DNA from: Macrostomum lignano
Lineage: Eukaryota
Length of the DNA: 64,000 nt
Assembly: GCA_002269645.1 (NCBI GenBank)
Contig: NIVC01001357.1
Location: 124,001 to 188,000 of the forward strand
Reading direction: 5' to 3'
This document shows, piece by piece, positions 13,441 to 62,566 of this stretch. Position numbers and translations under genes: made by a program. The notes under the pieces are model-generated. The model worked only from the letters and a program-made list of their open reading frames with translations. It searched no databases and was not told where the DNA came from. Every line of letters starts with the position of its first letter. The first letter of the stretch is position 1.

Positions 13441-14500
13441 ATTCAAGTCAAGTAAATACTTACATAAAAGACTAGTAAAAATACAAGTATCATAACATCG
13501 CATTTATTATAGATGTATATAAAACGTTGAATAAACGAGAATAATGTAGTAAAAGAACACATAGAAGCAATGACATTGAAAATGTTCAATAGCTTTAAAT
13601 TTAAACTTAATTACTTAAATTTAAAATTTAAACAATCAGTTTACTTAATAGACTTCGGACTGAGCGTGTGAGGGAGCCCACCCGCTCTCTGATGGGGTCA
13701 AGCGATTAGCTGTGAATCTGGCAATCAGCCCTGCTTGCAAGCTGGGAGCATGTGACTTGCTGCAACAAACGGCTTGAAAGCAACTATTATAAACAATCAG
13801 ACGGCCCGAGAGACGGTCACTGGGCCAGAAGGACAAAAGTTAAACCGGTGTGACCGGAAAACTGAGATGGTACGCCAATTAACATTTGAAAGCTTTGAAG
13901 TCTTGCGTTGTTTAGTCAATTTCCGTCTCAGTAAGTCAAGTTATCAGTCAACACAAGCTCAGCTCTCAGGCTATTCTGCCTCTCGTTTCATCGATCTTAA
14001 CCGATCGTTAAATTTATTGTGACTAATAACATTGCGTAACATTTATGAAAACTGAAAATGCATCAATATCGATTGAAAAGGCCGTCTCAAGGCCTCAAAC
14101 TGAGACAGTCAACCGATGACTCAGAGACTGAAACAAACAAGACACCCCCGACCCCTTGCCCTGTACCCTCACTAGCGATGGCTTTGCGGGGAGACAGAGA
14201 GAGACAGAGAGAGAGAGAAAGAGAGTGGGGAATATAATCCCAGCTTCCCTGCACGACGTTACTCGCTTTCCCATTCGATGGAGGACGAGAGATGGCAGAT
14301 GTCTATTTTTGTGCGTCCACCAACCGCCCCTGGGAAAAAACACCCGGTGACGCTATTACGCAATCCTGGAGAGGAAGCTCAGGACTAATAGAAAAGAAGC
14401 TGGCTCTGAATAATCCATACATTATTTGAACTGAGCAGGCCGGCTCAAGCAATAGAAGGAAACCTGTTTCTATAGCTGCCGCATCTTGTTGGCTTTTGCA

Positions 14501-25386: not shown

Positions 25387-28300
25387 ATGGCTGGGATGAA
25401 GTTTGAATATGACGAGTCAGGATCAACTTTCTATTATTTTCTTCTGGCTTTTTATGCACTTGTATTGTTGCCTATGACTTACTACTTTTGGCCGACATCT
25501 CAATCTGGTATGTAGAAAATAAAGTTTGCAAGTTTTACAATCATTCCTTAGACTACTTTTGAGTCTTGCAAATTTTTTTTTTAACTTTTAGCTTTTAAAC
25601 AAGCATTAGGGTTAGGGAAATAAGTAACAAGTCACATTTTGGCTACTTTAACTCAAGAGTTTTATTTTATAGGCCTATTTATATTTTTTCATCTTAGACA
25701 TAAGACAAAAATGAAAGTTACATGTTCTAGACTAGACTAGTATAGTGGTCTTAGTCTTAGACTAGCAATCGGTGCTCCCCTACTGGGGAACCAACAAAAA
25801 ATAAATACAAGTTTTTAATAAACTACATTTAGGCCTAGCTTCTTAATATCTTAGCAATTCTTCCCAAGTGTCACAGCATTATGATGTTTCCCCTAAGCAT
25901 ATAGTATTATTTTTTATTATAATTATACTATTTCATTTTGGAATACTTATAAAAATAGCAACTGCATGTCTAAAAAAATTGAGCTTATATATAGGCATGT
26001 TTGCCATGTAAGCACACATGGTATTGTTGGTTTAAATCTTGGCAATAAAAAGATTGCTATCATCTCTAGTGTTAAATGGATTCTATATTAGAAACATAGC
26101 CACTATATTTTAAAGTGTGAACTCATTAATGACATGGCCACTAGCATTTTGTAGACTTCATTAACATGGCCATTGTAAGACACCACTGTAAGAGAAGTAA
26201 GAGACATATTCTATACTATATGGACATGGCTGCCATGTCCATAAGCTTTAATATTATAGATATAGCTAGTATGTTTCTAAAATGATCGGACATTTTGTCA
26301 ACCAGCATTTTGTCAACTAGACATTATGGCAGCTCAGAAAGTTGTAGCTAATTATTATAGCTGCACCAGCTAGAGAATTTAGAAATGGTAATGCAATTTC
26401 AAGTTTGTTTAAAATGTATATATTTCTTAGAAGTAAATTTTTATAAAAACGTTTAGTCTTCAATGGTGTTGCAATACTTGAACCATAGTACCTGAATGCT
26501 ATGTACATGGTTTCAATATTTTTTATGATAAAACTTAAAATTTAAACTTAAATATGTTAATGTTAACAACCAACATAACGGACAAATAATTTTGGCCTAA
26601 ACCAAATGTCTAGTTGCCATAATGTCTAATTGAGAAAATACTAATTGACAAAATTCCAGTTGACAAAATGCTGGTTGATAAAATTCTAGTTGACAAAATG
26701 TCCTAGAACCATTTCTAAATGTAATGATTTCTTTTTCTATTATGGAAACAAATTTAGGCTTATGCTATGGTATAGCTATGTTATAAAGAATCTAGGGGAT
26801 CTTCTAGTTTGTTTTGCAATTTTTTTACAGTTTTAATTGGTGCCACAACATAGTGCCAAATCAGAAAATGTCTATGGCCAAATAAGTTGGCCAAATAAGT
26901 AAAAGTCTTGCATAAGGCAAATCAATAGTCTATAGGTTAAATCTTAGTATAGTAGTCTAATAAAAATATGAATAGCATCATATAGCTTTTTATTTTTAGC
27001 TTTGGAAGAAATCAGCTCTGCTTTATATATATATCTGCTAAGTAAATCTACAAACCTATATGTATGTTACAAGTTCAGGTCTACAAGCTTGACAAGTTTT
27101 AATAAAGTCTGCTATAGCTATAGATATAGTTACAGAAAGTTAAAGATATGGAGGTTTTTAGACAAAGTATATAGATATAAATATGGTTATAGGAACATAG
27201 ATTATAAGATAATAAAATGTTACCTTAAGTCCAAAATGTTCCATTATATATTTTAAGCAATTTTATATATAGGTAAAAAATAATCATTTTTTGTTTTAGC
27301 CTTTATATTAGAAAATTTTTAAGTCTAACATTGGCATACATAATTGGCATACTAAAAATTGCCAATTTCAGGTTTGGTATATATGCTAAATTTTGTTCAA
27401 AAAAAGCTCTTGCATGTAGTTAAGACCAGCAATTAGCTCCTCCTATTATTAAGCCAATAGAAAATGGAATAGTTCTTAGAATAAATTATATTTAGCTTCT
27501 TGCAGTAATCTCAGCAATTTTCCCTATAAGCAGTGTTGGGCACCATTAATGAAAATCTTAACTTCCATTAAAGGCAAAAGCATTAGTGTTCAAACAAAAA
27601 ATCTTAACTTTTTAACTCTTAATATCATTAAGTTAACTGAAAATTAACTGATAATCATTAATTAGGGTTAATCCGTTAAAGTTAACACAGAAAATACAGA
27701 AATCTTGCACTGCTTTTGCTTTTCCATCTTTTTAGCTAAACACAGGTCATCCAACCAATTTACAAGCTAAAAAAATAACAAAAAATTATAATAGTAAAAA
27801 CTTGTAAGTATAATACTACTAAAAGTAAGCATACAGTAAACAAATTAACTTATTTATTTGAAACTTAAAAAGCTAATTAGTTAATAATAAAATACGAATA
27901 GGAAGGTTTTTTCAGTAGCATTAGCAGGCACAGCAGAAAGTTACAAAAGATTGGCAAAGAAGTGAATCAAAGCAATCAATGCTCACACACAAGCAATAAA
28001 GTTCACAATTTTAATTCATTATTAAAGTTCATTAGTAAGAAGTTGTTACATCTGCATGATCATTGTCATAATCAAAGAGATTAATTAGGCATTTAGGTAA
28101 ATTCAAATACATTTGTAATGTTGTAACTTCTTGCCAGACTTGTATTTTTGTTTTTTCTTTGCATCGTTAGTCTTGACACTGTCATTGATGTTAACAATAA
28201 TTTTTTTGTTAACTCACAAAATAATTAACACAAATTTGTTAATCTGTTAGTTCAAAAAATCTTAATGGCAGTCCATTAACATTAATGAGAAATATTAATG

Positions 28301-31300: not shown

Positions 31301-33129
31301 CTCATCTCCCCCTTAACATTGTCTCCCTCTCACCCTCCCCCTTAACCTTGTCTCCCTCTCGCCCTTCTCCCCTTAACCTTGTCTCCCTCTCACCCTTCTC
31401 CTCTTAACCTTGTCTCCCTCTCACCCTTCTCCTCTTAACCTTGTCTCCTCACTGTCTTCCCTTAACCTACTCCCCTTAACTTTGTCTCCCTCTCGTCTCA
31501 TCCCCTATTACCTTTTTCAGCCTCAATCTTGACTCAGCTTTAATAACCTGAAAGAATAATGATTAGTTTTGCCTCGCCTATTCCCTGTCCAGGTTCCAAT
31601 GGTGATGAAGCAGCTGCCTCAGGTAAACGAAAAGAACAAGGAGCCACCGTTCTGTCTGCCATACGCTTTGAAGGCTCGCGTGTTGCTGCACGCGCATCTC
31701 AGCCGGCTGGACCTGAACCCCAATACGCTGGAGGTCGATAGGCGGACAGTTGTATGCAAGTGCCCGGCCCTGCTGCAGGAGATGGTGTCACTTAGCATGC
31801 AGCTTGTGGCCTGCGCCCAGTACTACGGTAGCCGCTGTGGCCACCCCCGCTTAGAGACTATCGAGTGCATCATGAAGCTGAGCCCCATGATTGTCCAGGG
31901 CCTATGGGAGAACAAGAGTCCAATATTGCAGCTGCCGCACATATCCGAAGATTCGTTGCGTCATTTTGTTACTAGGAAGCGAAATATTCGAACTATTCGA
32001 CAATTGGCCCTGATGCCGGATAGCGAGCGGCGGGCGCTGCTTAGGAGCCTGACCGAGGACCAGTACCGCGATGTTATGACCGTGTGCGCCGGCATGCCGC
32101 AGGTCGACGTGCAGAGCAAAATTGAGGTCATCGACGATGACAAACCGGAGCAGGTGAGCGGCTGGGCGAATGGGATCAGGGATATTCTGGGGAGATCTGA
32201 GATTTGTAGTAGTAATAGTAGTAGTAGTAATAGCAGTAGTAGCAGTAGTTAGTACTTACAGTATTACACCTGCCCAGAAACCGACAGCTCAGCCGCAGCT
32301 ACTGCGCGGCGCAGCTGAAGGCAGCGTACGGCTGTTCAGTCCAAGGACTGGGGGGTCGCCACACGCCCTCAATTACCCCAGCTAATGCTGGCACCCATTT
32401 TACAGCTGGGTGAACTGAAGCAATGCAGAGTTAAGTATCTTGCTCAAGGACACAAATTGTTCCAGTGGGATTGGGAATCGAACCCCCGCCCCGACCTTTC
32501 AGTTTTGAGTCGAGCGCCCTAACAAGTAGACTAAAAACCCTCCGAGTCTAGTAATAGTAGTAGTAAAAGTAGTCAATATTAAATTTGGGATCTGGGATAT
32601 TTGGGGAGATTTTATATATTTGGCTCCATCTGCGGTGTTAATAACTTAAGATCTGGGATAGATATCCAAAGGATAGCGGCAGTCCCGAATTTAGAAAACC
32701 TTATAGCAGTTTTTATACGGTTCGAAGTTTTATGCGCCACCCACACCGCCCCGGTAACTATGCAGGTGACCGCCAGCAGCCTGGTCACGGTGACGGTGAC
32801 CCTGACGCGGCGCGACCTGGCCGAGCTGATGTCGGCCACCTCCGCAGTCGGTGACGATGCCTCCGCCAACCAATTCGACGAAGCAGGAGACGATGAGTCG
32901 CAGCGGCAGCACACTCTGCTTCAAAATGGCTGCCAAGATGATTTGCTGACGGCGGCATCGCCGACGTCAAACGGCGGCTCGACGGTCGGCACCGACGGCT
33001 CCCCGGCAAAGAATTCGTCGCAGCAGCCTCAACAGTCGCATCATCATCAGCAGCAGCAGAAGAAGAAGCGCGGCAAGGACAGTTGGCTGAACAAGGGTAA
33101 GGGAAAGAGTAAACCGAAGCAGCAGGCCA

Positions 33130-43493: not shown

Positions 43494-44137
43494 GTTCACA
43501 CTGCGTAGCTCTGCGCTTCATTAAGCATAAGTGTAATCTCATCGCAACTGCAACCGATTTCCAGTTGGGCCAAGAAGTTCTGCTACTATACCATGCCCTA
43601 CGACGCGAAATAAGGACCTAAACTGGGCCGCGAACCTGCTTAAAACTAAAACCATTGATGAGCAACCCCTACCCTATGAGTTGATCCCAACCAACTCATG
43701 CCGCAGTGGTCTGCAAACGCATAGCCAATGGCTTTGACTGTTAAGCTCCCACAAGAAGCTATTTATTCAGCAAATATATCTAGCGGCCAACAGCGCCACC
43801 CAAATCACAAGTGGTTATATTTGCGCGTCTAAGTTTTTGCATTAAAAATGAAAAAAATCACGCCTTTAAGGCAAGCATTCCAAATTTCAATCGGTTGAAA
43901 CTTTGTGGACTTTTTTAATTTGATAAAAATTAAAATCAAACTATAAGTAAATAACTTTTGAGGCTTTGTATCTGAGCAATTACAAACTATTGAAATTATT
44001 TTTAATTAATTTTAATTGGTTTTGGTACATGAATTGAAATAAGGCAATTTTAAGGACTTTGAAATATCTCAGTCAAACTGATCATAAGGCATCAATACGT
44101 TATAGAGCAATATTGACAGGCTGCAGAGGGTTAAAAC

Positions 44138-44197
44138 CAAGGAGTTCTATAATTAGCAAGGTGCTAATTAGCAAGGTGCTAATTATAGAGCTCCTTG
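44138..44197. mobile_element. 60-bp hairpin MITE (P-superfamily-like termini)
   Basis: caaggagttctataattagca ... tgctaattatagagctccttg, flanked by gttaaaac / gttgaaac (8 bp, 1 mismatch). Confidence 0.65.
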
Positions 44198-44284
44198 GTT
44201 GAAACGAGCCAAAACCTCGAGGAGAGTAAGCGTCGGAACGTGAAAATGTCTATGGAAAAAACTGGAAAATCTATACAGCTGGGT

Positions 44285-44475
44285 CAAGGAGTTCTATAAT
44301 TAGCAACCTGGAGTGGAAGCGAGCTTTACCTCATGAGGCCATGCCAATTGTAAAGATAAGGAGCCAGCACTGAATGTCTATGGCTCTGTCTGACTCTGTC
44401 TATGCTAGTCTGGCCTAATGAGGCAAAACTGAAAAACTCGTTTCCACACCAGGTTGCTGGTTGTAGAACTCCTTG
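44285..44475. mobile_element. 191-bp MITE of the same family
   Basis: Begins caaggagttctataattagcaacctgg, ends ccaggttgctggttgtagaactccttg; 7-bp TSD gctgggt (44278-44284, 44476-44482). Confidence 0.7.
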
Positions 44476-44880
44476 GCTGGGTCAAGGAAGTCTGTGGTCT
44501 GAAGGCAGAGCTGCCCCACGTAAACAATAATCTATGTAGCTCAAAGAGTATTGAGGTCGTCTAGTATAGAGCACAGAATATACACAGAATAGTACATTAA
44601 TACCCATGCTTCAAGGGCGTTAATGGGAAAATCAGAGGGCGCCGTTATCATTGTGCCATAGACATTTGTGTCCTTGACAAAGTGGGACAAAATTAGTTAA
44701 TGATATTAACTGCCCGCTAATTTGCATTAGAGTAAGTGTGACTCCTGCAAGCGGGCTTAAATGTAGTTTATGGCATTAAAAGGCAAGAAAAAGTGCCCAG
44801 CGGGCACAAAGGTCATGGTACAATGCCGATTCGAGCATTTTTGTTTAAAAAATCGGTGCAAGAATTGAAATCACACCAGC

Positions 44881-45926
44881 CTACTCTTGTTGTGAAGCTT
44901 TGATAAGTAGGGCTTGAGTTTTTGCCATAGACTATTCAAAGAGCGACTTTTATTCTTTGCTTTCAAATGAAAATTAAGTTCAGTCTGAGCGTTTCTGCGC
45001 AGCATGGCGGGAAAATCCAGACTCCAGTGCGCAGCCTATGGATGCCCAAACTATGCCTACAAGTGCCCTCCGGACACCCGATTTCATCGATTTCCGTCAA
45101 GCCCCGAGAGGTGAGTAAACTTATTATATGAGGGGTCTTTCAAAAGTTCGTAGAAAAGCCATCTCCCCTTAAACATATGCCCTTGAAAATTTTCCATTCT
45201 CCAAGCTTTCTCCTCCATTCTCCAGGAGGCTGGCTGCTTTTCAAGCTATTCAAATCTGAGGAAAAGTGCGAGGAGTGCCAGCAGTCGTTAAAAGGCGATG
45301 GCTCGGGAGAAATGCGCTTCCTGCAGCTCAAGAACGGACAGGGCGGGACTGGAAATCTGATCATTCCCAACAAAGCAGTCATATCTGCAGTCTGTCAGAT
45401 GGAGCGCTCCTTCACGACAACGGACAAAGAGCTTCTGAAGGACGTGAGCAAACGGCTTCAGGAAAAGTTATTTCCCATTGTTCTTGCAAATATTCAGACG
45501 CACAGCTCGGATCACGGCGAACGCTGTGCTAAGGCAATGGCCAAGTTGTTTGCCAGACTTCGCCTGCATCACTGGTGCAACAGTCAGAGGACGCTCGCTC
45601 AGCAGAGAAAGCGGGGGCGTACGACAGGAATAAAGAGAGCTGAAGACTAAAGAGAGGAAGAAGCTGATGCGATTGAATGCTGTTTAACTGTAGTTTAACT
45701 GTGATGCGAATGAATTCTGCTTAGCTGTTGTTTGTTGATGATGCGAATGAATTTTGCTTAACTGGAGTTCTTCAGAGTGTTTGGTTTGTTTAGATGATAA
45801 AATACGAAAAATGATAAAATTTTACTTTTGGTCCTCCAGGTGGGATCTCTGACTACCTGCGAGACTTTGCTAAATTATTCTTCGCTAATTTTATACTACT
45901 GGCCATAGACTTCACAACAAGAGTAG
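44881..45926 (+). mobile_element. Internally deleted P-element/THAP9-type transposon
   Basis: THAP exon 45004-45110 MAGKSRLQCAAYGCPNYAYKCPPDTRFHRFPSSPER|gtgagt. Transposase C-terminus 45230-45650 (KCEECQQSL...FLQLKNG...LIIPN...ARLRLHHWC). 17-bp inverted repeat ctactcttgttgtgaag at 44881 and 45910. No TSD found. Confidence 0.75.
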
Positions 45927-45991
45927 TGCACACGAATTTTAATTCGGCTTCATGGAAATCGCTCGATTTGGCATTCTGTGTATATTCTGTG

Positions 45992-46450
45992 AGGATAGAG
46001 TGCCAATATGGATGAAAATCTGAAGCCAATTTTTAGAATCCACCTACCCCCTCCGGTCACCAAGCTTTTTAGTCTATGGCACAAGTTGTGGCTAGAATGG
46101 TGTACAAAGCCGATGCTTAAGATTAATACAGATGCATCAGAAACGCAGTTATTGCAATTAGCTACCGCACACTTTAGTGGCAAGGCTGTTGTTGTTCAGA
46201 CGCAAGGGCTATATGGCATGGCTGTTACGGAGTTGTGTATCGACGACGGCAACTGAGTCTGGTGACTGAGCGATGTTGTCTTGCTTATTTGATACATGCA
46301 TTTTCTAAGTGTGAAATGTCTTATATTTCTGAGCATCGGCTTTGTACACCATTCTAGCCACAACTTGTGCCATAGACTAAAAAGCTTGGTGACCGGAGGG
46401 GGTGGTGGATTCTAAACATCGGATTTTCATCCTTATTGGCACTCTATACT
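45992..46450. mobile_element. Fold-back element with ~120-bp inverted arms
   Basis: Arms ~45996-46121 and ~46328-46446 are reverse complements (e.g. caagctttttagtctatggcacaagttgtggctagaatggtgtacaaagccgatgct), with a ~205-bp spacer. Confidence 0.8.
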
Positions 46451-46941
46451 AGGCGACCTCAATACTCTTTGGTGTAGCTATATGTAAATATGCATCCGTG
46501 AATTTGACTTGACTTACTTGACTTAGCTGCAGGAGGCATCGTCCGGCGGATGCAGCGAGGAGGCGGAGGAGACCGTCCATTTTGCTAGGCCCTGGCGACC
46601 AATGACTTCCATCGAAGTGATGTCGCTTAGGGGGACCCGTCGGTCTCGCCTGCAACACGGTCCTCCTCACCGGCAGTGGGGAAGAACTCAGCTCGTCCCG
46701 TGTCCTTAAGGTACCGAGAGCGGTATGCTCTCAGGCCTTCAAACGTTCCTGCATCTGTGAATTTAGTCTGTGACAGAAACTGACGATCATTTTTTGCATG
46801 ATTAAAACAGTTTCCTTAGCCATCTAAGAGACAAAAATATGAGTAGTTCCTTAGTTTCTTAATCATTTAAATAATGGTATATTCTTCTGCAGTCGGCACT
46901 GCAGATGAGTGCATTGACTAGCGTTTCCCTATAGGCTAGCA

Positions 46942-48016
46942 GTCTATGGTCAAGAAAGACAATAACACGCAGTCTCGTAAGAAGTCTCTTTGGCCATAGA
47001 CAATTTGAACAGAACAGTCATTTAAGCGAGCATCAGTAAGAACTGTTTGCTGCGAGATATAAAGCTTGGGCAAATGCTACTTGAGTATGCAGAACTAAAT
47101 TAATTAAAAGCGAGACATGTCTACATCTACTAAACTTCTACCGCCGTTACTTAACTACAACGCTCTGCCGACGGATGAGATTAGTGGCGTCAGTGGCGCC
47201 AAAGCCCCTTAAAGGACTGCCTGGTCAACAGTTCCGGTTCTCTGAGAAATGTGCACGGGGATTTCGATTCCTAAAAGATTTCATGAAGACCCTGAGTGCT
47301 AAAGCTGGATTGAGTAAAAATTACACTAATCACTGTATCCGGTAAGTGTTGACCTCTGTTCAAGAATGATAAATGTTTTACAATATTCGTTCAATAATTA
47401 TTTATTCTATAACTTTCAGTGTCACTAGAGTATGCGACCTTGAAAGCCGTGGCCATTCGTTGCCAAGCATTATGATGGTAACGGGACACAAATGCGAAAA
47501 GACCGTGAAGCGATACTTAAGCACGCGCCGCGATCGGAGTTTGTTTAAGAGTTCCGAGGTCGTACACGATGCATTGCATCGTGACATTCCAAGCGCTGGT
47601 GAACAGGCCTCTGGTTCCGGCTTGTGTGCTGCTGAAAAATTTGATAAACCTACCGCCTGCACATCCGTGTTGACTGTCGCCAGCAGCAGTGTCGCTACGG
47701 TATCGTACAACAAACCTGTTCAAATCCAAGCTAGCCCGGCAAAAAAAATGCGTGTCAATATCGATGGCGGTAATAATTTGATAAGTATTGAATTTGAGTA
47801 ACGACTTTTTTGACAAGAATTTTAAACAATTTGTTGCTCGAAAAGGCTATTAACAAAAAACGTTTAATTGTGTTAAATACGTTTTTTTTACTCCGTATCG
47901 TTTGCACGTTTGTCAGTTTTTCGTTATTATGAAATAAAAACCATAGACTATAACTTGCATACATGTTGACTTTTTATCTATGGACAAAAACACGCAAGTG
48001 TGGACAATAACACGCA
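46942..48016 (+). mobile_element. Crypton-like tyrosine recombinase unit 1 (internally deleted)
   Basis: Coding remnant 47116-47801: MKTLSAKAGLSKNYTNHCIR|VTRVCDLESRGHSLPSIMMVTGHKCEKTVKRY (H-x-x-R, TGH, catalytic Y). Intron 47342-47419. N-terminal piece fused out of frame. Direct repeat gacaataacacgca at 46958 and 48003. Confidence 0.8.
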
Positions 48017-48679
48017 TCCCAAATGCGTGTTAATGGGTAGCGAAATGCTTGTCAATGCCCACTAATTTTAAACCATATAGTGTGCTGGACAAAAGTTGCA
48101 GCAGCATGCTTGAGAGAAAATATCTGGCTATAAAAAAATACGAAATACCCTACCGCAGAACTTTATAGAAGCAAATTTAAAGCAGTCAACTACAGTTTAT
48201 GAGAGAGCTATTCAGACTTCATGGACTCTGCTTAAACTTCAGAGGTCCAATCAGCCTTGGACTAAAGTTCCGCAACACGCATCAGCAGCTAGAAGAGTGT
48301 AGAAGAGTCTGAACTAGAAGAGCCAGTTCAACAGCGCCTCCCACATGTTTGTACCACCTTCAACTGGTTGCCTCCTTTTGGCTGCGTTTCAACTCAGCAC
48401 GCCTCCTGAAATCTCTTAATGATGTTGTCGGCTGCTATATTCCCAGCTGATTGGCCAACAAAATCCAGTCCTCGGCGGCGCGATTAAAAGCATTGATCAA
48501 TCTCTGACAATCGAGTCGAGAAATTTGCGCATAGTTGCCACGCTGCGCCATTGCGCCCTCGAAATTCCACATTGACAACTAGCAAAATTCTATGTTAATA
48601 AGATTGTCATTAACTTTTCTTAGCTCAAGTGTCCCTTTTCAGGGTATAAATGAATGAAATTTCGTCTCGAATTTTCGTA

Positions 48680-49480
48680 GTCTATGGTAAAACAAGTTCC
48701 AACCAAGTATGCTTTTATATTTGAAAAGAAATTATACTTTTATAGGATTATTATGATTTTGTTTTCTTTTACGCTTTCGTACTTTTATAATTTCGTAACA
48801 GTAACGCAACAATTTTCGGCTTGTTAGTTTAGTTCATTCAATCAGACGACGTTTTACTTTTTCCAAGCTACTGCTTACCAACGATCCAGTTAGATTAAAC
48901 GTGCAATTCTGGAAGGTCCCGTTGAAGTTCACGACGATTGCAGCCGGCTCTGATTGCCGTTCTCCATACTTGGTTTCAATAGCCCTTGTCTCACTGATCG
49001 CCACTTCACCATCCTGACCAACACGACGGATAGAGACCTGGGAGGCGCTTGTCTCGACGCTCAGCGCTGATGACATCGCACGGAAGTCGGCATCGCGCCT
49101 CACTCGCGTATAGCGCTCTACGCTCGCTGAATTCTTGTGGCCGGTGTTAACTGCGATGGTCCTGATCTTCGCTTAGGTCCTTAATCTCTTCAGCGTCTAG
49201 TTGTCGAGCGAACACGCCACTCAATTCTTCCAAATAGCGGGTTGCTGACTCTGACGACACCCAATTCAACTCCTTTGTTGACAGACCACTAATAAGTTGG
49301 TCGGGCAGATTCGCATAGTTCAACATTCCTAGTCAGTAGTTGATTAGACAGACAGAACTTTCTAGAATCGTTGCTTGAAAACGCGGCTCCCTAGCCCTGT
49401 CCTCTCGATCAATCAAAGTGTTTAGTCTATGGCACAAAGATTTGCCCATCCACCGAAAAAAATAGCCTTCGACCATAGAC
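48680..49480 (-). mobile_element. Crypton-like tyrosine recombinase unit 2 (internally deleted)
   Basis: Coding remnant 49326-48834: MLNYANLPDQL...LDAEEIKDLSEDQD joined by frameshift to IRTIAVNTGHKNSASVERY...NFNGTFQNCTFN. Confidence 0.7.
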
Positions 49481-49594
49481 TTTCTCAACTTCCTGCCTAT
49501 CTCTAACATAGTGCCCGCAAATTTCCACGTTGTTACCCGCAAATTTCTTGCATTGATTAAGTTAATGACAATAATTTTTTGTCGCTCGGAAGTA

Positions 49595-51083
49595 CCATAG
49601 ACAAAATACTTGGTTGAAATTGTATGGCCATAGGCTGCTTATCATAGTTTTTGGCCATAGACTATGTTTTCAAAGAAGAAAGGCACAGATGTGAGAGAGA
49701 GGATTGAGAAAATGAAAGCTCTCTAATAACCCTACTACGAGCTAGCTAGAAAAGCATCATGGAGCAGGACGAGGTGGCGTTTCCATGGATGAAGAATATA
49801 ATTGGATCGCCAAAAGCTCGATTTTTTGGTCCTAGCCATAGACAAGCACCAGCATCACAAGAAGCTCAAAATGGGATCACAACTCGTACGGCATTCGGCT
49901 GCTGTACGGACTGGGAGAACGGGGCAGAGAGCACCTGTCGAGCTTGGAGATAAAGGATTGGTTGGAGAAGAAAAGCGACTCTGAAGGAAGGATGTAACTT
50001 GGAAGGACAAAGAACAGGGCAGCTGATCAGGCGAAAGCCAAAAGTGACGTCGAAATCAAGCAGGCCAGGATATATGACACAGCAATTATAGACGAGTATT
50101 TTCTATACAAACCAGTGAAATCCTGCCTGGTGAAACGAAGGACACTTCCCTGTTCCCAAGACCGCTAAGAAATTCGCCGACTGGAGCACGGCGGTTTTGT
50201 GCTGAGCAGAAGAGAGGCGTAAACTACCTCATCAACTTCATGAAGACTCTGAGTGGAAAGGCCAAGCTATCCAAAGTGTACACCAACCATGCACTGCATC
50301 AGGTAAACCCCTTTGCCCAAACGTATAGCCTCATGATGCTTACAATTGTGCGATACCTTCTGCCCATTATGTTAGAGTCAGCAGGGTGAGCGACTTAGAA
50401 GCAGCTGGACATTCCATGACCGACATCATGGCGATAACCGGCCGGAAGTGCGAAAAGACCGTTCGCCGATATCTCTCAATCAGACGTGACAAGCTGCTAA
50501 AGAAGTGCAGCGACGCCGAAAGCAAAGTACTGGACATGGAGAAAAACCTACACCGGATTCAGATGGCCATGTTATTACGAGCGAGCGCCCATCAGCCAGT
50601 ACAACAGATGGCCCAGCAGTCAACACAAGCGTCTGCCCAGTCAACATCCAGAGCTCAACGGTCCAGTGGGCGGTCAACTTCGCAAACGTTCATCCAAATG
50701 GCAAGAACATCTTCGTCATTCAAAACAGCACGTTCAACCAATGCAGTCTGTGAGAATTCATGAGCAACTGACTCTACAAGCCAAAATATTTCAAGAGACT
50801 TTAGCCCTCTTGAAATTTGAAATTTGATTGTATTTCTTATTGTTTCTTGTCACCTTTTGTTACTGTGCATTGTTGTATTGTATTGTATTGTTACTGTGGT
50901 ATACTATTTTTCTAAATAAATTGTGGACATTATCCACAAGTCATGGACATTATCCAGAACTGTGACGCTAGAACCACAGGCCATAGAGTGAAATCAAAGT
51001 TGCGATAGTTTTTACCATAGACAAAATATTATCTAAAAGCACTGACTAGCGACAATGTCAGTTTCATTTTGCCATAGACTATG
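49595..51083 (+). mobile_element. Crypton-like tyrosine recombinase unit 3 (defective)
   Basis: Coding remnant ~49800-50763: KQARIY, SLFPRPL, FMKTLSGKAKLSKVYTNH, then intron 50303-50375 at the same position as in unit 1, then RVSDLEAAGHSMTDIMAITGRKCEKTVRRY. 4-bp insertion near the TNH motif and TGH changed to TGR. Confidence 0.8.
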
Positions 51084-52037
51084 AAACCCAGAAATTATCC
51101 TCCCCCATTCGCTTGCTTGCGTCTGGCAAAATCAATTGCAAATAGGAAGAATTCTATTGAGGCATATACGAGTATTGTGCTACGCTCGTAAAAATGGTTG
51201 CATTTTCTGACCATAACGAGCGTCATTCAAGTAATCACAATCTGAGCAATAAAAGGTCATCAAGGACCAAGCATTCAACCATCCCATAGGAACAAATTTT
51301 CTGTTTGAAATTTTTCTTTATTAAGAAATGAACACTTGCATTAGTGCAAGGGTACTTCTCCACAAAAAGAAAGTTTAGTTGCTGAGCTATTATTAATTAC
51401 TAATAGACTCATTGCTCTAATTGAAAGCATTTCTCCGTTTGTGTTTGTGGACGATCAACGCTTCCTAAGATGGCCCCCGCGAAGTCTCTGGATCCCACGG
51501 CAATCGTGCAGAAGCAGACGTGCTTAAAGATATTTTTAATTAGGTACTTGTAATTAGCTCTAGGCTACATGTAGCTGTTCCGCCTTAATTAGCAGCTTAA
51601 GGGCGGGGCTAGAGCTTTTTTGAGGTGATCAAGTTTGTTTCAAATCAGACATCTCTGAATTGGATTGTGAAAATTATAAAAAAAATTAATCCATTTTTCT
51701 GGCAAAAATGGAACAAAATAAATGCATTTACCAGTTGGAGGTTGCTGTGAAACCAAAGCTGAATTTTGCAAACTGGCATCTCTTCGTTGATGGTTACCTG
51801 AGCTGCTTGCTTTTCAAACGTACGACCAGCAATGCATCTAGGATGTCAACCATTGAGCATATGCATTTGGAAATAGAAGCACTTTTAAACACAATTCTGT
51901 AATTCTGTAATGACACCTGTTTTGTTTGAATTTCATGAAACTTTTCAATAGTTTTCATCTCTGCAGCTGTGAACATTTTTAATCAGATTTATGTAAGATG
52001 GCAACACAAATAGTCTGAAATGCTGAAATAAAAGCCC

Positions 52038-53117
52038 CAGGGACAACTAAAACCCTCGGGACGCGAAACGAGCCAATTCATGGCAAAAAATCTTAGGGGC
52101 TCGCTTAAAAGTATTGTTCTATGGCTTTTTTAAGTCTTTTCTGCTATCAGGCATTAACGGTTAGATTAAATAGTAAAGCGAGGCAATGTCGAGTATTTAA
52201 TTTAAAGAATAGGAACCAGTGATATAATTACAATGTATTTACAATAAAGTAACCGCCATATCAACAAAAAACTCCAACGGCAAGAAGATAAAAGATGAAA
52301 GCGAAGATATAACTCCAACGGCAAGAAGATAAAGGATGAAAGCGAAGATGAAACTCCAACGGCAAGAAGATAAAGGATGAAAGCGAAGATGAAACTCCAA
52401 CGGCAAGAAGATAAAGGATGAAAGCGAAGATGAAACTCCAACGGCAAGAAGATAAAGGATGAAAGCGAAGATGAAACTCCAACGGCAAGAAGATAAAGGA
52501 TGAAAGCGAAGATGAAACTCCAACGGCAAGAAGATAAAGGATGAAAGCGAAGATGAAACTCCAACGGCAAGAAGATAAAGGATGAAAGCGAAGATGAAAC
52601 TCCAACGGCAAGAAGATAGAAGCAAATACGGAACTCCAAGGACAAGACGACACAAACAGTCAGTAGCTCGTAAATAAAGGAAACGCTGGAACTTCACCTA
52701 CTGAGCATCTAACTTCCGAAGCTTTCTATCATGGGATGTCGTCGGTATTGGTGGGAGTTTTGACGAGCGTCTTTCTAGTCTTACCTGGAGAATATTTGGC
52801 AGCGCCTTTCTCCATCGCTCTCGCTCCTGTGGATCTCTGGGAAACGCAAATGTCCGTGTCCGAACGGCTTCAGAGTTGTAATTTGACGAGCACGGAAATA
52901 CGCTGCACTTTCTTGGCATTTCATCAAGTGAATAAAAAATGCTTCTCTTGATATAGTTCAGCTTAGCTTCACTGCAGGCCGCAGCTAAAGCAATTTTAAT
53001 TTGCCTGATAGCAGAGAAGACTTGAAAAAGCCATAGAACAATACTTTTAAGCGAGCCCCTCAGATTTTTTGCCATGAATTGGCTCGTTTCGCGTCCCGAG
53101 GGTTTTAGTTGTCCCTG
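52038..53117 (-). mobile_element. Non-autonomous THAP-carrying DNA element (1080 bp) with ~115-bp TIRs
   Basis: TIRs start cagggacaactaaaaccctcgggacgcg and end gtccctg. 9-bp direct repeat taaaagccc (52029-52037, 53118-53126). THAP exon 52919-52785 MPRKCSVFPCSSNY...FAFPRDPQERERWRKALPNILQ|gtaag. Confidence 0.85.
52270..52620. repeat. 41-bp tandem repeat inside the THAP element
   Basis: actccaacggcaagaagataaaggatgaaagcgaagatgaa x ~8. Confidence 0.95.
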
Positions 53118-54639: not shown

Positions 54640-57600
54640 AATGAGGATCTGCAGGGATCTAAACTCAGGATCTGCAGGGATCTAAACTCAGGATCTGCAG
54701 GTATCTAAACTCAGGATCTGCAGGGATCTAAACTCAGGATCTGCAGGGATCTAAACTCAGGATCTGCAGGGATCTAAACTCAGGATCTGCAGGGATCTAA
54801 ACTCAGGATCTGCAAGGATCTAAACTCAGGATCTGCAGGGATCTAAACTCAGGATCTGCAGGGATCTAAACTCAGGATCTGCAGGGATCTAAACTCAGGA
54901 TCTGCAGGTATCTAAACTCAGGATCTGCAGGGATCTAAACTCAGGATCTGCAGGGATCTAAACTCAGGATCTGCAGGGATCTAAACTCAGGATCTGCAGG
55001 GATCTAAACTCAGGATCTGCAGGGATCTAAACTCAGGATCTGCAGGGATCTAAACTCAGGATCTGCAGGGATCTAAACTCAGGATCTGCAGGGATCTAAA
55101 CTCAGGATCTGCAGGTATCTAAACTCAGGATCTGCAGGGATCTAAACTCAGGATCTGCAGGGATCTAAACTCAGGATCTGCAGGGATCTAAACTCAGGAT
55201 CTGCAGGGATCTAAACTAAAGATCTGCAGGTATCTAAACTCAGGATCTGCAGGGATCTAAACTCAGGATCTGCAGGGATCTAAACTCAGGATCTGCAGGG
55301 ATCTAAACTCAGGATCTGCAGGGATCTAAAATGAGGATCTGCAGGGATCTAAACTCAGGATCTGCAGGGATCTAAACTCAGGATCTGCAGGGATCTAAAC
55401 TCAGGATCTGCAGGGATCTAAACTCAGGATCTGCAGGGATCTAAACTCAGGATCTGCAGGTATCTAAACTCAGGATCTGCAGGGATCTAAACTCAGGATC
55501 TGCAGGGATCTAAACTCAGGATCTGCAGGGATCTAAACTCAGGATCTGCAGGGATCTAAACTCAGGATCTGCAGGGATCTAAACTCAGGATCTGCAGGGA
55601 TCTAAACTCAGGATCTGCAGGGATCTAAACTCAGGATCTGCAGGGATCTAAACTCAGGATCTGCAGGGATCTAAACTCAGGATCTGCAGGGATCTAAACT
55701 CAGGATCTGCAGGTATCTAAACTCAGGATCTGCAGGGATCTAAAATGAGGATCTGCAGGGATCTAAACTCAGGATCTGCAGGGATCTAAACTCAGGATCT
55801 GCAGGGATCTAAACTCAGGATCTGCAGGGATCTAAACTCAGGATCTGCAGGTATCTAAACTCAGGATCTGCAGGGATCTAAACTCAGGATCTGCAGGGAT
55901 CTAAACTCAGGATCTGCAGGGATCTAAACTCAGGATCTGCAGGTATCTAAACTCAGGATCTGCAGGGATCTAAACTCAGGATCTGCAGGGATCTAAACTC
56001 AGGATCTGCAGGGATATAAACTAAAGATCTGCAGGTATCTAAACTCAGGATCTGCAGGGATCTAAACTCAGGATCTGCAGGGATCTAAACTCAGGATCTG
56101 CAGGTATCTAAACTCAGGATCTGCAGGGATCTAAACTCAGGATCTGCAGGGATCTAAACTAAAGATCTGCAGGTATCTAAACTCAGGATCTGCAGGTATC
56201 TAAACTCACGATCTGCAGGTATCTAAACTCAGGATCTGCAGGGATCTAAACTGAGGATCTGCAGGGATCTAAACTCAGGATCTGCAGGGATCTAAACTCA
56301 GGATCTGCAGGGATCTAAACTCAGGATCTGCAGGGATCTAAACTCAGGATCTGCAGGTATCTAAACTCAGGATCTGCAGGGATCTAAACTCAGGATCTGC
56401 AGGGATCTAAACTCAGGATCTGCAGGGATCTAAACTCAGGATCTGCAGGGATCTAAACTCAGGATCTGCAGGTATCTAAACTCAGGATCTGCAGGGATCT
56501 AAACTGAGGATCTGCAGGGATCTAAACTAAAGATCTGCAGGGATCTAAACTCAGGATCTGCAGGGATCTAAACTCAGGATCTGCAGGGATCTAAACTCAG
56601 GATCTGCAGGGATCTAAACTCAGGATCTGCAGGGATCTAAACTAAAGATCTGCAGGTATCTAAACTCAGGATCTGCAGGGATCTAAACTCAGGATCTGCA
56701 GGTATCTAAACTCAGGATCTGCAGGGATCTAAACTCAGGATCTGCAGGTATCTAAACTCAGGATCTGCAGGGATCTAAACTAAAGATCTGCAGGTATCTA
56801 AACTCAGGATCTGCAGGGATCTAAACTAAAGATCTGCAGGTATCTAAACTCAGGATCTGCAGGGATCTAAACTCAGGATCTGCAGGTATCTAAACTCAGG
56901 ATCTGCAGGGATCTAAACTCAGGATCTGCAGGGATCTAAACTCAGGATCTGCAGGTATCTAAACTCAGGATCTGCAGGGATCTAAACTCAGGATCTGCAG
57001 GGATCTAAACTCAGGATCTGCAGGGATCTAAACTCAGGATCTGCAGGGATCTAAACTCAGGATCTGCAGGGATCTAAACTCAGGATCTGCAGGTATCTAA
57101 ACTCAGGATCTGCAGGGATCTAAACTGAGGATCTGCAGGTATCTAAACTCAGGATCTGCAGGGATCTAAACTCAGGATCTGCAGGGATCTAAACTCAGGA
57201 TCTGCAGGGATCTAAACTGAGGATCTGCAGGGATCTAAACTCAGGATCTGCAGGGATCTAAACTCAGGATCTGCAGGGATCTAAACTCAGGATCTGCAGG
57301 AATCTAAACTCAGGATCTGCAGGGATCTAAAATGAGGATCTGCAGGGATCTAAACTCAGGATCTGCAGGGATCTAAACTCAGGATCTGCAGGGATCTAAA
57401 CTCAGGATCTGCAGGGATCTAAACTCAGGATCTGCAGGTATCTAAACTCAGGATCTGCAGGTATCTAAACTCAGGATCTGCAGGGATCTAAACTCAGGAT
57501 CTGCAGGGATCTAAACTAAAGATCTGCAGGTATCTAAACTCAGGATCTGCAGGTATCTAAACTCAGGATCTGCAGGTATCTAAACTCAGGATCTGCAGGG

Positions 57601-60600
57601 ATCTAAACTGAGGATCTGCAGGGATCTAAACTCAGGATCTGCAGGGATCTAAACTCAGGATCTGCAGGGATCTAAACTCAGGATCTGCAGGGATCTAAAC
57701 TCAGGATCTGCAGGTATCTAAACTCAGGATCTGCAGGGATCTAAACTCAGGATCTGCAGGGATCTAAACTCAGGATCTGCAGGGATCTAAACTCAGGATC
57801 TGCAGGGATCTAAACTCAGGATCTGCAGGTATCTAAACTCAGGATCTGCAGGGATCTAAACTGAGGATCTGCAGGGATCTAAACTAAAGATCTGCAGGGA
57901 TCTAAACTCAGGATCTGCAGGGATCTAAACTCAGGATCTGCAGGGATCTAAACTCAGGATCTGCAGGGATCTAAACTCAGGATCTGCAGGGATCTAAACT
58001 AAAGATCTGCAGGTATCTAAACTCAGGATCTGCAGGGATCTAAACTCAGGATCTGCAGGTATCTAAACTCAGGATCTGCAGGGATCTAAACTCAGGATCT
58101 GCAGGTATCTAAACTCAGGATCTGCAGGGATCTAAACTAAAGATCTGCAGGTATCTAAACTCAGGATCTGCAGGGATCTAAACTAAAGATCTGCAGGTAT
58201 CTAAACTCAGGATCTGCAGGGATCTAAACTCAGGATCTGCAGGTATCTAAACTCAGGATCTGCAGGGATCTAAACTCAGGATCTGCAGGGATCTAAACTC
58301 AGGATCTGCAGGTATCTAAACTCAGGATCTGCAGGGATCTAAACTCAGGATCTGCAGGGATCTAAACTCAGGATCTGCAGGGATCTAAACTCAGGATCTG
58401 CAGGGATCTAAACTCAGGATCTGCAGGGATCTAAACTCAGGATCTGCAGGTATCTAAACTCAGGATCTGCAGGGATCTAAACTGAGGATCTGCAGGTATC
58501 TAAACTCAGGATCTGCAGGGATCTAAACTCAGGATCTGCAGGGATCTAAACTCAGGATCTGCAGGGATCTAAACTGAGGATCTGCAGGGATCTAAACTCA
58601 GGATCTGCAGGGATCTAAACTCAGGATCTGCAGGGATCTAAACTCAGGATCTGCAGGAATCTAAACTCAGGATCTGCAGGGATCTAAAATGAGGATCTGC
58701 AGGGATCTAAACTCAGGATCTGCAGGGATCTAGACTCAGGATCTGCAGGGATCTAAACTCAGGATCTGCAGGGATCTAAACTCAGGATCTGCAGGGATCT
58801 AAACTCAGGATCTGCAAGGATCTAAACTCAGGATCTGCAGGGATCTAAACTCAGGATCTGCAGGGATCTAAACTCAGGATCTGCAGGGATCTAAACTCAG
58901 GATCTGCAGGGATCTAAACTCAGGATCTGCAGGGATCTAAACTCAGGATCTGCAGGGATCTAAACTCAGGATCTGCAGGGATCTAAACTCAGGATCTGCA
59001 GGGATCTAAACTCAGGATCTGCAGGAATCTAAACTCAGGATCTGCAGGGATCTAAACTCAGGATCTGCAGGGATCTAAAATGAGGATCTGCAGGGATCTA
59101 AACTCAGGATCTGCAGGGATCTAAACTCAGGATCTGCAGGGATCTAAACTCAGGATCTGCAGGGATCTAAACTCAGGATCTGCAGGTATCTAAACTCAGG
59201 ATCTGCAGGGATCTAAACTCAGGATCTGCAGGGATCTAAACTCAGGATCTGCAGGGATCTAAACTCAGGATCTGCAGGGATCTAAACTCAGGATCTGCAG
59301 GGATCTAAACTCAGGATCTGCAGGGATCTAAACTCAGGATCTGCAGGGATCTAAACTCAGGATCTGCAGGTATCTAAACTCAGGATCTGCAGGGATCTAA
59401 ACTCAGGATCTGCAGGGATCTAAACTCAGGATCTGCAGGGATCTAAACTCAGGATCTGCAGGGATCTAAACTCAGGATCTGCAGGGATCTAAACTAAAGA
59501 TCTGCAGGTATCTAAACTCAGGATCTGCAGGGATCTAAACTCAGGATCTGCAGGGATCTAAACTCAGGATCTGCAGGGATCTAAACTCAGGATCTGCAGG
59601 GATCTAAACTAAAGATCTGCAGGTATCTAAACTCAGGATCTGCAGGGATCTAAACTCAGGATCTGCAGGGATCTAAACTCAGGATCTGCAGGGATCTAAA
59701 CTCAGGATCTGCAGGGATCTAAAATGAGGATCTGCAGGGATCTAAACTCAGGATCTGCAGGGATCTAAACTCAGGATCTGCAGGGATCTAAACTCAGGAT
59801 CTGCAGGGATCTAAACTCAGGATCTGCAGGGATCTAAACTCAGGATCTGCAGGGATCTAAAATGAGGATCTGCAGGTATCTAAACTCAGGATCTGCAGGG
59901 ATCTAAACTCAGGATCTGCAGGGATCTAAACTCAGGATCTGCAGGGATCTAAACTCAGGATCTGCAGGGATCTAAACTCAGGATCTGCAGGGATCTAAAC
60001 TGAGGATCTGCAGGGATCTAAAATGAGGATCTGCAGGGATCTAAAATGAGGATCTGCAGGGATCTAAACTCAGGATCTGCAGGGATCTAAACTGAGGATC
60101 TTGGATCGAAACTGAGGATCTACAGGGATCTAAACTGAGTATCTGGGATCTAAACAGAGGATCTTGGATCGAAACTGAGGATCTTGGATCGAAACTGAGG
60201 ATCTGCAGGGATCTAAAATGAGGATCTGCAGGGATCTAAAATGAGGATCTGCAGGGATCTAAACTCAGGATCTGCAGGGATCTAAACTCAGGATCTGTAG
60301 GGATCTAAACTCAGGATCTGCAGGGATCTAAACTCAGGATCTGCAGGGATCTAAAATGAGGATCTGCAGGGATCTAAACTCAGGATCTGCAGGGATCTAA
60401 ACTCAGGATCTGCAGGGATCTAAACTCAGGATCTGCAGGGATCTAAACTCAGGATCTGCAGGGATCTAAACTCAGGATCTGCAGGGATCTAAACTCAGGA
60501 TCTGCAGGGATCTAAACTCAGGATCTGCAGGGATCTAAAATGAGGATCTGCAGGGATCTAAACTCAGGATCTGCAGGGATCTAAACTCAGGATCTGCAGG

Positions 60601-61740
60601 GATCTAAACTCAGGATCTGCAGGGATCTAAACTCAGGATCTGCAGGGATCTAAACTAAAGATCTGCAGGTATCTAAACTCAGGATCTGCAGGGATCTAAA
60701 CTCAGGATCTGCAGGGATCTAAACTCAGGATCTGCAGGGATCTAAACTCAGGATCTGCAGGGATCTAAAATGAGGATCTGCAGGGATCTAAACTCAGGAT
60801 CTGCAGGGATCTAAACTCAGGATCTGCAGGGATCTAAACTCAGGATCTGCAGGGATCTAAACTGAGGATCTGCAGGGATCTAAAATGAGGATCTGCAGGG
60901 ATCTAAACTCAGGATCTGCAGGGATCTAAACTCAGGATCTGCAGGGATCTAAACTCAGGATCTGCAGGGATCTAAACTCAGGATCTGCAGGGATCTAAAA
61001 TGAGGATCTGCAGGGATCTAAACTCAGGATCTGCAGGGATCTAAACTCAGGATCTGCAGGGATCTAAACTCAGGATCTGCAGGGATCTAAACTCAGGATC
61101 TGCAGGGATCTAAACTCAGGATCTGCAGGGATCTAAACTGAGGATCTGCAGGGATCTAAAATGAGGATCTGCAGGGATCTAAAATGAGGATCTGCAGGGA
61201 TCTAAACTCAGGATCTGCAGGGATCTAAACTGAGGATCTTGGATCGAAACTGAGGATCTACAGGGATCTAAACTGAGTATCTGGGATCTAAACAGAGGAT
61301 CTTGGATCGAAACTGAGGATCTTGGATCGAAACTGAGGATCTGCAGGGATCTAAAATGAGGATCTGCAGGGATCTAAACTCAGGATCTGCAGGGATCTAA
61401 ACTCAGGATCTGCAGGGATCTAAACTCAAGATCTGCTGGGATCGAAACTGAGGATCTTGGATCGAAACTGAGGATCTGCAGGGATCTAAAATGAGGATCT
61501 GCAGGGATCTAAAATGAGGATCTGCAGGGATCTAAACTCAGGATCTGCAGGGATCTAAACTCAGGATCTGCAGGGATCTAAACTCAGGATCTGCAAGGAT
61601 CTAAACTCAAGATCTGCTGGGATCTAAACTGAGGATCTTGGATCGAAACTGAGGATCTACAGGGATCTAAACTGAGTATCTGGGATCTAAACAGAGGATC
61701 TTGGATCGAAACTGAGGATCTTGGATCTAAACTGAGGATC
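54640..61740. repeat. Large satellite, 23-bp unit (~300 copies)
   Basis: caggatctgcagggatctaaact; right edge decays into ~20-bp variants out to ~62020. Confidence 0.98.
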
Positions 61741-62566
61741 TCGGATCTAAATCGAGGATCTGATACATGTATTCAATATGAGAATATGATATATAAACTG
61801 AGGATTTGGCATCTAAATGGAGAATCTGGGATCCAAACTGAGGATCTGAAATAAAAAATGAGTATTTGGGATCTAAATCAAGGATCTGATATTCAATAAG
61901 AGAATATGGAATCTAAATTGAGGATCTGGGATCTAAACTGACGATCTGGGATCTAAACTGACGATCTGGGATCTATATCAAGGATTTGATATTCAATATG
62001 TGGATCTGGGATCGAAACTAAGGATGTGCAATAGAAATCCCTTTAAAAACCAGCATGATCGCATGACTAACAGGCAGTGCTTTCAATTATCTTATACATT
62101 AATTAAAACAGCATAGCTAATGAAGGAGCCGATAGTCAAGATATTTTAACGAGTTCAATAAACGCTTCAATTCAAAAAATCAGGGGTCTCATTTTCAACT
62201 GATTGGGGCGCCCCTTTGATCGCTAGTCAGCCTGCAACAATCAGTCATGACTGGCTTTTGCTGGGCGACTTTGAAGCAGACAAATATGCGTGTGCTAATT
62301 ATAGTTCCTGCCATTGATGTGGGCGAGCTAATGAATGGAATTGCTTGCTTTCTTTCAGTGTGGTCCCTGCAGGCACAGTTAGGATAAATAAAAAATGAAA
62401 TGCATTGTCTATTCATTTTCGTTTTTCTGCTTTTTTGCAAAAAATCGAGTTTTATTTCAGGCTGCAGATTTCAACCCGGGCAATTCAGGGTCGGGAAGTA
62501 CTTGCAGTGAGTTCATTTGTGGCGTGAGCAACGTCATACTGCACCCCCGACTGCTCTACCCCCCTT

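Follow-up and report, generated by a model that had tools for sequence, protein, structure and literature searches.

A ten-base motif recurring in unrelated transposon families of the flatworm Macrostomum lignano

A ten-base motif in a cluster of transposon remnants

Within a 64-kb stretch of Macrostomum lignano DNA (contig NIVC01001357.1, positions 124,001 to 188,000; hereafter the window), a ~6.9-kb cluster of transposon remnants carries many copies of the octamer CCATAGAC. The cluster holds a non-autonomous element that bears a THAP reading frame and is bounded by terminal inverted repeats (TIRs), miniature inverted-repeat transposable elements (MITEs), and three remnants of one tyrosine-recombinase family, designated U1, U2 and U3 (Table 1). 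Exact search of the window returned 23 copies of the octamer against 1.61 expected from dinucleotide shuffles, in which the largest count was 5, and 18 of the 23 lie between 44248 and 51079. An earlier reading made from the letters alone (the sequence-only reading) had listed these 18 copies by position and strand and had called them far above chance; all of them were recovered, and the enrichment held. Among the 7- to 10-mers of the region, CCATAGAC ranks first for enrichment.

The full motif is a 10-mer, RCCATAGACW (R-CCATAGAC-W). Of the 18 cluster copies, 17 have a purine just before the octamer and all have A or T just after it; a T-rich stretch precedes. Seventeen cluster copies fit the complete rule, and the window contains 20 such 10-mers against 0.48 expected. 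The rule also sets likely chance octamers apart from the others, namely the copy at 3099, which falls within a 15-bp tandem repeat, and the copy at 9412, which codes for Ala-Ile-Asp in a methyltransferase exon. Beyond ~15 positions the sequence around the copies is unrelated, and a sensitive self-comparison revealed no longer repeat carrying them, indicating that they are not pieces of one longer repeat. The exception is the pair 46072/46370, whose members each lie in one arm of a perfect 72-nt inverted repeat.

One-mismatch variants of the octamer number 37 in the window and ~8 in the cluster, where chance alone predicts ~5, and so show no enrichment. The sequence-only reading had pointed to variants (CCATAGAA) in the TIRs of a THAP element at 52-53 kb. 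These amount to one one-mismatch variant counted twice via the TIR and, since such variants occur at chance level, they carry no weight; the palindrome tatggccata reported at 49623 is present. The scarcity of one-mismatch variants was considered as a sign of selection and withdrawn, because young insertions predict the same. The insertions are possibly young, as the arms of the hairpin are perfect, the TIRs are 97% identical and U2 has few disabling mutations.

No published account of the motif was found: a literature search with the octamer gave primer coincidences only, and papers on M. lignano promoters and transposons contained no such motif. Rfam and tRNA scans of the window returned no matches, which argues against the octamer being the upstream element of a known small-RNA gene. 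Several other identities were rejected. The octamer is not a P/hAT-type 8-bp target duplication, the actual duplications being ATGTAGCT and TAAAAGCC(C). A trans-splice or 3' splice acceptor, which the T-rich flank and the ATAG might suggest, does not fit a strict motif that is used on both strands and has copies outside genes. The consensus sites of THAP1 type (TxxGGCA), YY1/Pho, the RFX X-box and NF-I were also compared, and none matches the invariant positions.

Elements that carry the motif

Table 1 Coordinates of the motif, the elements that carry it and other features. Positions refer to the window unless a contig is named.
Feature	Coordinates	Strand	Details
Octamer, forward copies in cluster	44656, 44925, 45903, 46370, 46994, 47941, 49473, 49595, 49655, 49836, 51015, 51072	+	
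Octamer, reverse copies in cluster	44248, 44376, 46072, 46942, 48680, 49425	-	
Octamer copies outside cluster (n=5)	3099, 8961, 9068, 9412, 26870		
Octamer between two MITE copies	44248..44255	-	flank T, outside the RCCATAGACW rule
Two 10-mers outside cluster	8960-8969 and 9067-9076	+	107 bp apart; apparent intron of the minus-strand FkbM-type methyltransferase gene
Isolated 10-mer	26869..26878	-	AT-rich stretch
Divergent pair A	46942..47001		GTCTATGG-N44-CCATAGAC (46942-/46994+); 10 bp inward of U1's left inverted repeat
Divergent pair B	49425..49480		GTCTATGG-N40-CCATAGAC (49425-/49473+); between the oppositely oriented U3 and U2
Short MITE copy	44135..44200		66 bp, palindromic, terminal sequence CAAGGAGTTCTATAATTAGCAA, no octamer
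Long MITE copy, same family	44285..44475		190 bp, 43-nt inverted ends, central 10-mer 44375-44384 (-)
Non-autonomous THAP-bearing TIR element	44542..46471	+	30-bp TIRs at 44542-44571 and 46442-46471; target duplication; octamers 44656+, 44925+, 45903+, 46072-, 46370+
Hairpin inside THAP element	45992..46450		arms 46046-46117 and 46332-46403, perfect over 72 nt, one octamer each
Candidate U1 element, deleted recombinase element	46911..48058	+	remnant 47085-47801; imperfect inverted repeat at 46911-46931 / 48038-48058; octamers 46942-, 46994+, 47941+; variant ATCTATGG at 47976
Candidate U3 element, deleted recombinase element	48603..49572	-	remnant 49166-48966; 14-nt inverted repeat at 48603-48616 / 49559-49572; octamers 48680-, 49425-, 49473+
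U2, deleted recombinase element	49548..51100	+	ends approximate; remnant 49785-50763; 5' octamers 49595+, 49655+, 49836+, variant 49628; 3' octamers 51015+, 51072+, variant 50981; poly(A) signal AATAAA at 50916
Second THAP TIR element	52038-53117		116-bp TIRs, THAP start (Pfam E 1.5e-4), internal 41-bp tandem array, target duplication TAAAAGCCC
FkbM-type methyltransferase exons	~9951-9382 and 8692-8012	-	
Innexin gene	14945-16741		intron 139 bp (15289-15427)
Minisatellite array	54644-61762		7.1 kb, 23-bp unit
Other minisatellites (examples)	10502-11424, 11909-13437, 30182-31448		
L001	M. lignano contig NIVC01002014.1		21 kb; intact 449-aa homologous recombinase gene
L005	Logan contig		intact family member; octamers 101 and 191 bp upstream of ATG, both reverse

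The THAP-bearing element is a well-delimited unit, with TIRs of the form CAAAGAGTATTGAGGTCG(T/C)CTAGTATAGAG that match at 29 of 30 bases and an 8-bp target duplication (ATGTAGCT / GTGTAGCT). All five of its octamers are internal, and those nearest the ends lie 114 bp (left) and 94 bp (right) inside them. The THAP reading frame is shortened, and the octamer at 44925..44932 stands 79 bp upstream of its ATG (45004), in the gene's orientation. The encoded CAAYGCPN...RFHRFP aligns to the first 28 positions of the Pfam THAP domain at E 0.016, which is below threshold, the remaining domain being deleted. A 172-codon C-terminal open reading frame (ORF) follows at 45132-45647; neither Pfam (E<=1) nor a PDB sequence search yielded a match to it, and in our own reading only may it resemble the C-terminus of P/THAP9. 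The hairpin within the element is an inverted duplication of its right subterminal region, and the perfection of the 72-nt arms suggests a recent duplication event.

The three recombinase remnants were placed by their relatives. A profile search with U1 and U2 found 1648 relatives among 1.8 billion proteins; the closest named one, an M. lignano 'Tyr recombinase domain-containing protein', is 58% identical to U2, and the top relatives match Pfam DUF3504, Phage_integrase and QRICH1. We assign the family to Kojima and Jurka's CryptonA/DUF3504 lineage (PMC3212892), with which it shares stand-alone proteins of ~450 aa that have a QRICH1/SAM-like region at the N-terminus together with a tyrosine-recombinase/DUF3504 domain, with HxxR, GH and Y in U1. 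The remnants themselves fall below Pfam thresholds, neither the single ORF pieces nor the repaired U2 translation matching DUF3504. A word-indexed protein search with U2 gave no match, relatives being reached only by the full profile search, and a PDB sequence search with the intact recombinase described below was uninformative. Among the gene identities proposed by the sequence-only reading, the tyrosine recombinase is thus borne out by profile relatives and THAP is weakly supported (E 0.016 and 1.5e-4 for the two elements). The label 'P-like' gained no support from the Pfam and PDB searches. The 30-bp TIRs and 8-bp duplication do agree with P-element/THAP9 elements, which have TIRs of ~31 bp and duplicate 8 bp, but 8-bp duplications also occur in hAT elements, so that they cannot single out P-element/THAP9.

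Full-length relatives mapped onto the window show that U1, U2 and U3 are all internal deletions with both flanks retained. U1 keeps only residues aligning to ~302-442 of the 449-aa relative P0195 (47187-47756); of the catalytic residues, HxxR (HCIR), GH and RY/Y are kept in the C-terminal box and the first arginine falls in the deleted part. U3 keeps only residues aligning to ~359-417 of relative P0046 (49166-48966). U2 has a tentative N-terminal stub near ATG 49785, then a deletion, then residues aligning to ~217-405 of P0195 (49878-50538), with one stop, at least one frameshift, and H-to-R and other changes at catalytic residues. An intron-like insert is found at one common codon, just after the HxxR box, in U1 (47343-47430), U2 (50302-50385) and the intact member at locus L005 (1313-1410); the intact gene at locus L001 has no insert at that codon.

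Candidate ends could be proposed for these units. U1 is bounded by a 21-nt inverted repeat (86%; GCATTGAC(T/A)AGC(G/A)TTTC...), with no target duplication, and U3 by the perfect 14-nt inverted repeat ATTGTCATTAACTT. These boundaries of the recombinase units are provisional, as the inverted repeats behind them are short and only modestly significant. Described animal Cryptons are reported to lack terminal repeats, and fungal and oomycete ones have terminal direct repeats of 4-6 bp (Kojima and Jurka 2011, PMC3212892); unlike these, the present units are seemingly bounded by short inverted repeats, with the octamers inside. In U1 and U3 the octamers lie 10-150 bp inside the candidate inverted repeats, and GACAATAACACGCA is present at both ends of U1. 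In U2, the distance from octamer to ATG is 104-130 bp, and the 5' and 3' modules both hold CCATAGACAAAATA(C/T)T and ATAGTTTTT..CCATAGAC.

The arrangement described by the sequence-only reading was confirmed in two respects. The divergent pairs said to lie 40-44 bp apart are pairs A and B, with spacers of 44 nt and 40 nt, respectively. Remnants are bracketed by copies in the gene's own orientation, and by our count 13 of the 16 cluster copies that can be assigned to a gene share its orientation.

A second motif, (GACAAT)AACACGCA, was noticed at both ends of U1 (46958-46971 and 47989-48032). The window has 8 copies of AACACGCA where ~2 would be expected, 5 of them between 46964 and 48274.

The motif at other loci

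Both the motif and its layout recur in M. lignano. An intact recombinase, which the sequence-only reading had proposed to look for, was found at L001 (449 aa) and at L005. L001 contains six octamers, each conforming to the 10-mer rule, where 0.47 would be expected. They include the divergent pairs 6807-/6880+ and 9623-/9707+ and a further copy 107 bp upstream of the recombinase ATG. The pair 9623-/9707+ adjoins the recombinase gene, a copy with one mismatch comes after the poly(A) signal, just as it does in U1, and the gene is flanked by a 23-nt inverted repeat (96%; 9723-9745 / 11547-11569). The left arms of the recombinase inverted repeats from the window and from M. lignano both hold ACTAGCGTTT, which occurs once in each sequence. 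Near the L001 and L005 recombinase genes the 10-mer rule holds in all eight copies, and the exact octamers of these intact genes are upstream only. The family members with which the motif is found (window, L001 and L005) are only 50-58% identical in protein.

The other L001 pair, 6807-/6880+, belongs to a Merlin/IS1595-like element (6199-6969) with an internal deletion and is situated immediately within its 5' TIR. This element has 46-bp TIRs, the 8-bp target duplication CAAAAGCC and a minus-strand remnant of an ISXO2/IS1595-type transposase (DDE_Tnp_IS1595, E 1.8e-5). An ORF of THAP-like appearance beside L001 14059 is not THAP by Pfam.

M. lignano loci that had been picked for their innexin genes (84.6 kb) contain five 10-mers against 0.64 expected. 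One of the five lies in an innexin intron (L087). In the same locus, 3748-3917 is a MITE of the 44285-44475 family, 81% identical and with the 10-mer conserved, and a 546-aa gene that lacks transposon hallmarks and shows only a faint tau-tubulin-kinase resemblance has a 10-mer 151 bp before its ATG. In locus L002, another of the five, at 14059-14068, lies ~190 or 760 bp upstream of a piggyBac-like (DDE_Tnp_1_7) remnant, a single case compatible with chance. Across these unrelated or diverged genes, the distance from octamer to ATG is similar, at 79 bp (THAP ORF), 104-130 bp (U2), 107 bp (L001), 101 bp (L005) and 151 bp (L087 gene).

The motif does not follow the recombinase into more distant lineages. 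Two relatives at 42-46% identity (L085 and L086) contain no copy, and in 218 kb from 76 metagenomic recombinase loci that are more distant still, 3 octamers occur where chance predicts ~6.7, indicating that the motif was not inherited along with the recombinase. Nor is it restricted to one family, the 10-mer being present in recombinase, THAP TIR, Merlin/IS1595-like and MITE elements. As judged from the loci compared, the motif is a lineage-specific feature of Macrostomum, neither inherited with recombinase elements nor restricted to them.

Beyond the cluster, the window contains coding sequence for an innexin, for Sec63, for an FkbM-type methyltransferase and for part of a Cys-loop receptor. 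The DNA of the innexin gene is 81-83% identical to Logan contigs L088 and L089; its closest named relatives are flatworm proteins, a near-identical protein is not on record, and an exact-protein search with its ORF matched no contig. No transposon remnant was recognised around the two methyltransferase 10-mers (8960-9076). Some interspersed repeats, among them the MITE at 44285-44475, are 81-91% identical between the window and M. lignano contigs. Minisatellites are exceptionally abundant (Table 1), and the 29-bp repeat unit at 28795-29011 is also present in M. lignano locus L002. The target duplications of two unrelated TIR elements, TAAAAGCCC at 52038-53117 in the window and CAAAAGCC at 6199-6969 in L001, are very alike, which hints at a common target preference.

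Readings of the motif

We favour, at about an even chance, the reading that RCCATAGACW is a lineage-specific, putative host-factor or promoter-proximal site that several transposon families have adopted. A sequence-specific Macrostomum factor, most probably a DNA-binding protein of the host with a role in transcription, would recognise the 10-mer, and unrelated families would carry the site subterminally or close to their promoters: Crypton-like recombinase elements, the THAP TIR element, the Merlin/IS1595-like element and the MITE. Often the site is laid out as two divergent copies immediately within the 5' end, with a single further copy ~80-150 bp upstream of the ATG. The motif lies inside cut-and-paste elements away from their joints, and the same layout recurs in unrelated elements, which is what an adopted host-factor site would look like. 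The sequence-only reading had offered such a site, used by both kinds of element, as its alternative, and this is the better supported of its two proposals.

There is a direct precedent in this species, where heat shock elements were independently acquired in their promoters by several clades of LTR (long terminal repeat) retrotransposons (PMC12801592). The two cases are alike in that a short, defined motif sits, in one to several copies, near the transcription-unit starts of unrelated families in the same genus. They differ in that the present motif belongs to DNA transposons, occurs also at 3' ends and matches no factor that we could name. The ~6.9-kb cluster itself would consist of five or six neighbouring elements with one to six sites each; such a pile-up, in a repeat-rich region by large satellites, needs no special mechanism.

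Several observations weigh against a host-factor site. Every unit also has octamers at its 3' end, downstream of the gene and beyond the poly(A) signal (45903, 47941, 48680, 51015 and 51072), and these are not explained by a plain promoter element. The deleted remnants keep both octamer-bearing ends, as expected if the ends act in cis for mobility. Both upstream copies at L005 are reverse-oriented. Among ~10 host gene starts in the loci read, a 10-mer falls within 300 bp only at the uncharacterised L087 gene, so that a role in ordinary host promoters rests on one case. The M. lignano sequence covered amounts to ~106 kb.

The 3' copies and the retention of both ends lead to a second reading, which we consider unlikely but a serious rival, in which the octamers would be subterminal cis-elements for Crypton-like mobilisation, that is, arm-type or accessory sites for the DNA-binding domain at the N-terminus of the recombinase. 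Assembly would take place at both ends or on an excised circle, strand exchange would occur nearby, and other elements bearing the site, where its presence would be secondary, might be cross-mobilised. In keeping with this, each recombinase unit has octamers ~30-150 bp from both candidate ends and a centre free of them. U1, U2 and U3 have lost their middles and kept both ends, like non-autonomous DNA transposons, the modules on the two sides of U2 resemble each other, and the motif accompanies family members as diverged as those of the window, L001 and L005 (merely 50-58% identical).

The occurrence of multiple sites in two orientations is also reminiscent of lambda attP with its arm sites and of the repeats that En/Spm and Ac carry subterminally. 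Subterminal repeats bound by transposases include the 12-bp TNPA motifs of En/Spm, the AAACGG hexamers of Ac and the THAP-domain site in P-element ends. Like those, the present motif is short and occurs in many copies and both orientations, concentrated no farther than 100-300 bp from either element end and overlapping with the promoter region. Those repeats, however, are family-specific and bound by the element's own protein, whereas the present 10-mer is common to at least four unrelated element types. The Merlin-like, THAP TIR and MITE elements that carry it, in one instance as a divergent pair, rely on other chemistry and have TIRs and target duplications of their own. A mobilisation site would likewise not be expected upstream of the L087 gene, which lacks transposon hallmarks, nor does it sit easily with the lack of the motif in L085, L086 and the 76 more distant loci, or with intact L001 and L005 genes whose exact copies are upstream only.

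A broader form of this idea, which we hold to be quite improbable, takes RCCATAGACW as the shared cis-signal of a trans-acting Macrostomum mobilisation system in which the Crypton-like recombinase or a partner, for instance a THAP protein, would bind both ends of many sequences that are unrelated in other respects. Such a system could move or rearrange any DNA flanked by RCCATAGACW and would give eukaryotes an equivalent of a cassette or cross-mobilisation system.

Alternatively, the divergent pair could itself be a tiny mobile or exchangeable module, either a palindromic mini-element of 60-110 bp or a captured promoter cassette, that inserts into the 5' regions of different transposons or is exchanged among them. 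The L001 pair at 9617-9720 is a near-perfect palindrome (36-nt arms, 86% complementary), and pairs recur beside the 5' ends of unrelated elements. However, the spacers of pairs A and B and of L001 6807/6880 have no common sequence and are not palindromic, the pairs lack flanking target duplications, and the majority of copies are single, all of which makes this a very doubtful account.

The remaining reading was the one the sequence-only reading preferred, in which the octamer is the crossover core of a site-specific recombination system and the locus a hotspot where cassettes of two superfamilies were inserted serially at CCATAGAC. Direct, gene-oriented copies do bracket the gene remnants, and, as in integron-like cassette arrays or integration hotspots, serial units are flanked by one short motif. 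In addition, the reverse complement of the octamer includes TATGG, the terminal direct repeat of most oomycete and diatom CryptonS (PMC3212892); the chance of such a coincidence, for a 5-mer in an 8-mer on either strand, is ~1%, and we treat this as a lead only. Unlike the sites of such arrays, however, the octamers lie off the joints, in both orientations even within single units, and have no core architecture, and one supposed cassette is a cut-and-paste TIR element.

The joints of the THAP element are its TIRs and 8-bp duplication, and its ends (44542/46471) map 94-114 bp away from the nearest octamers, an outcome that the sequence-only reading had itself named as refuting its proposal. Likewise, the candidate inverted repeats of U1 and U3 are outside the octamers, and the U3/U2 junction (49548-49572) is free of them. 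Octamer pairs are divergent with spacers of 40-76 nt or convergent with a spacer of 27 nt, and none is an inverted pair with the 6-8 bp spacer of the usual recombinase core (PMC3212892). With animal Cryptons reported to lack terminal repeats, the motif present in M. lignano contexts without a recombinase, and distant recombinase relatives devoid of it, we regard the crossover box as highly improbable.

If the octamers served Crypton-like mobilisation, they would show for the first time what an animal Crypton requires in cis to be mobilised. If instead, as we favour, the 10-mer is a binding site for a factor shared among elements, it would offer a handle on transposon activation and recognition in a flatworm that regenerates, offers stem-cell biology and can be made transgenic. 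The poorly characterised transposons of Macrostomum, including Crypton-like elements with apparent short inverted ends, would also gain a simple marker for their annotation.

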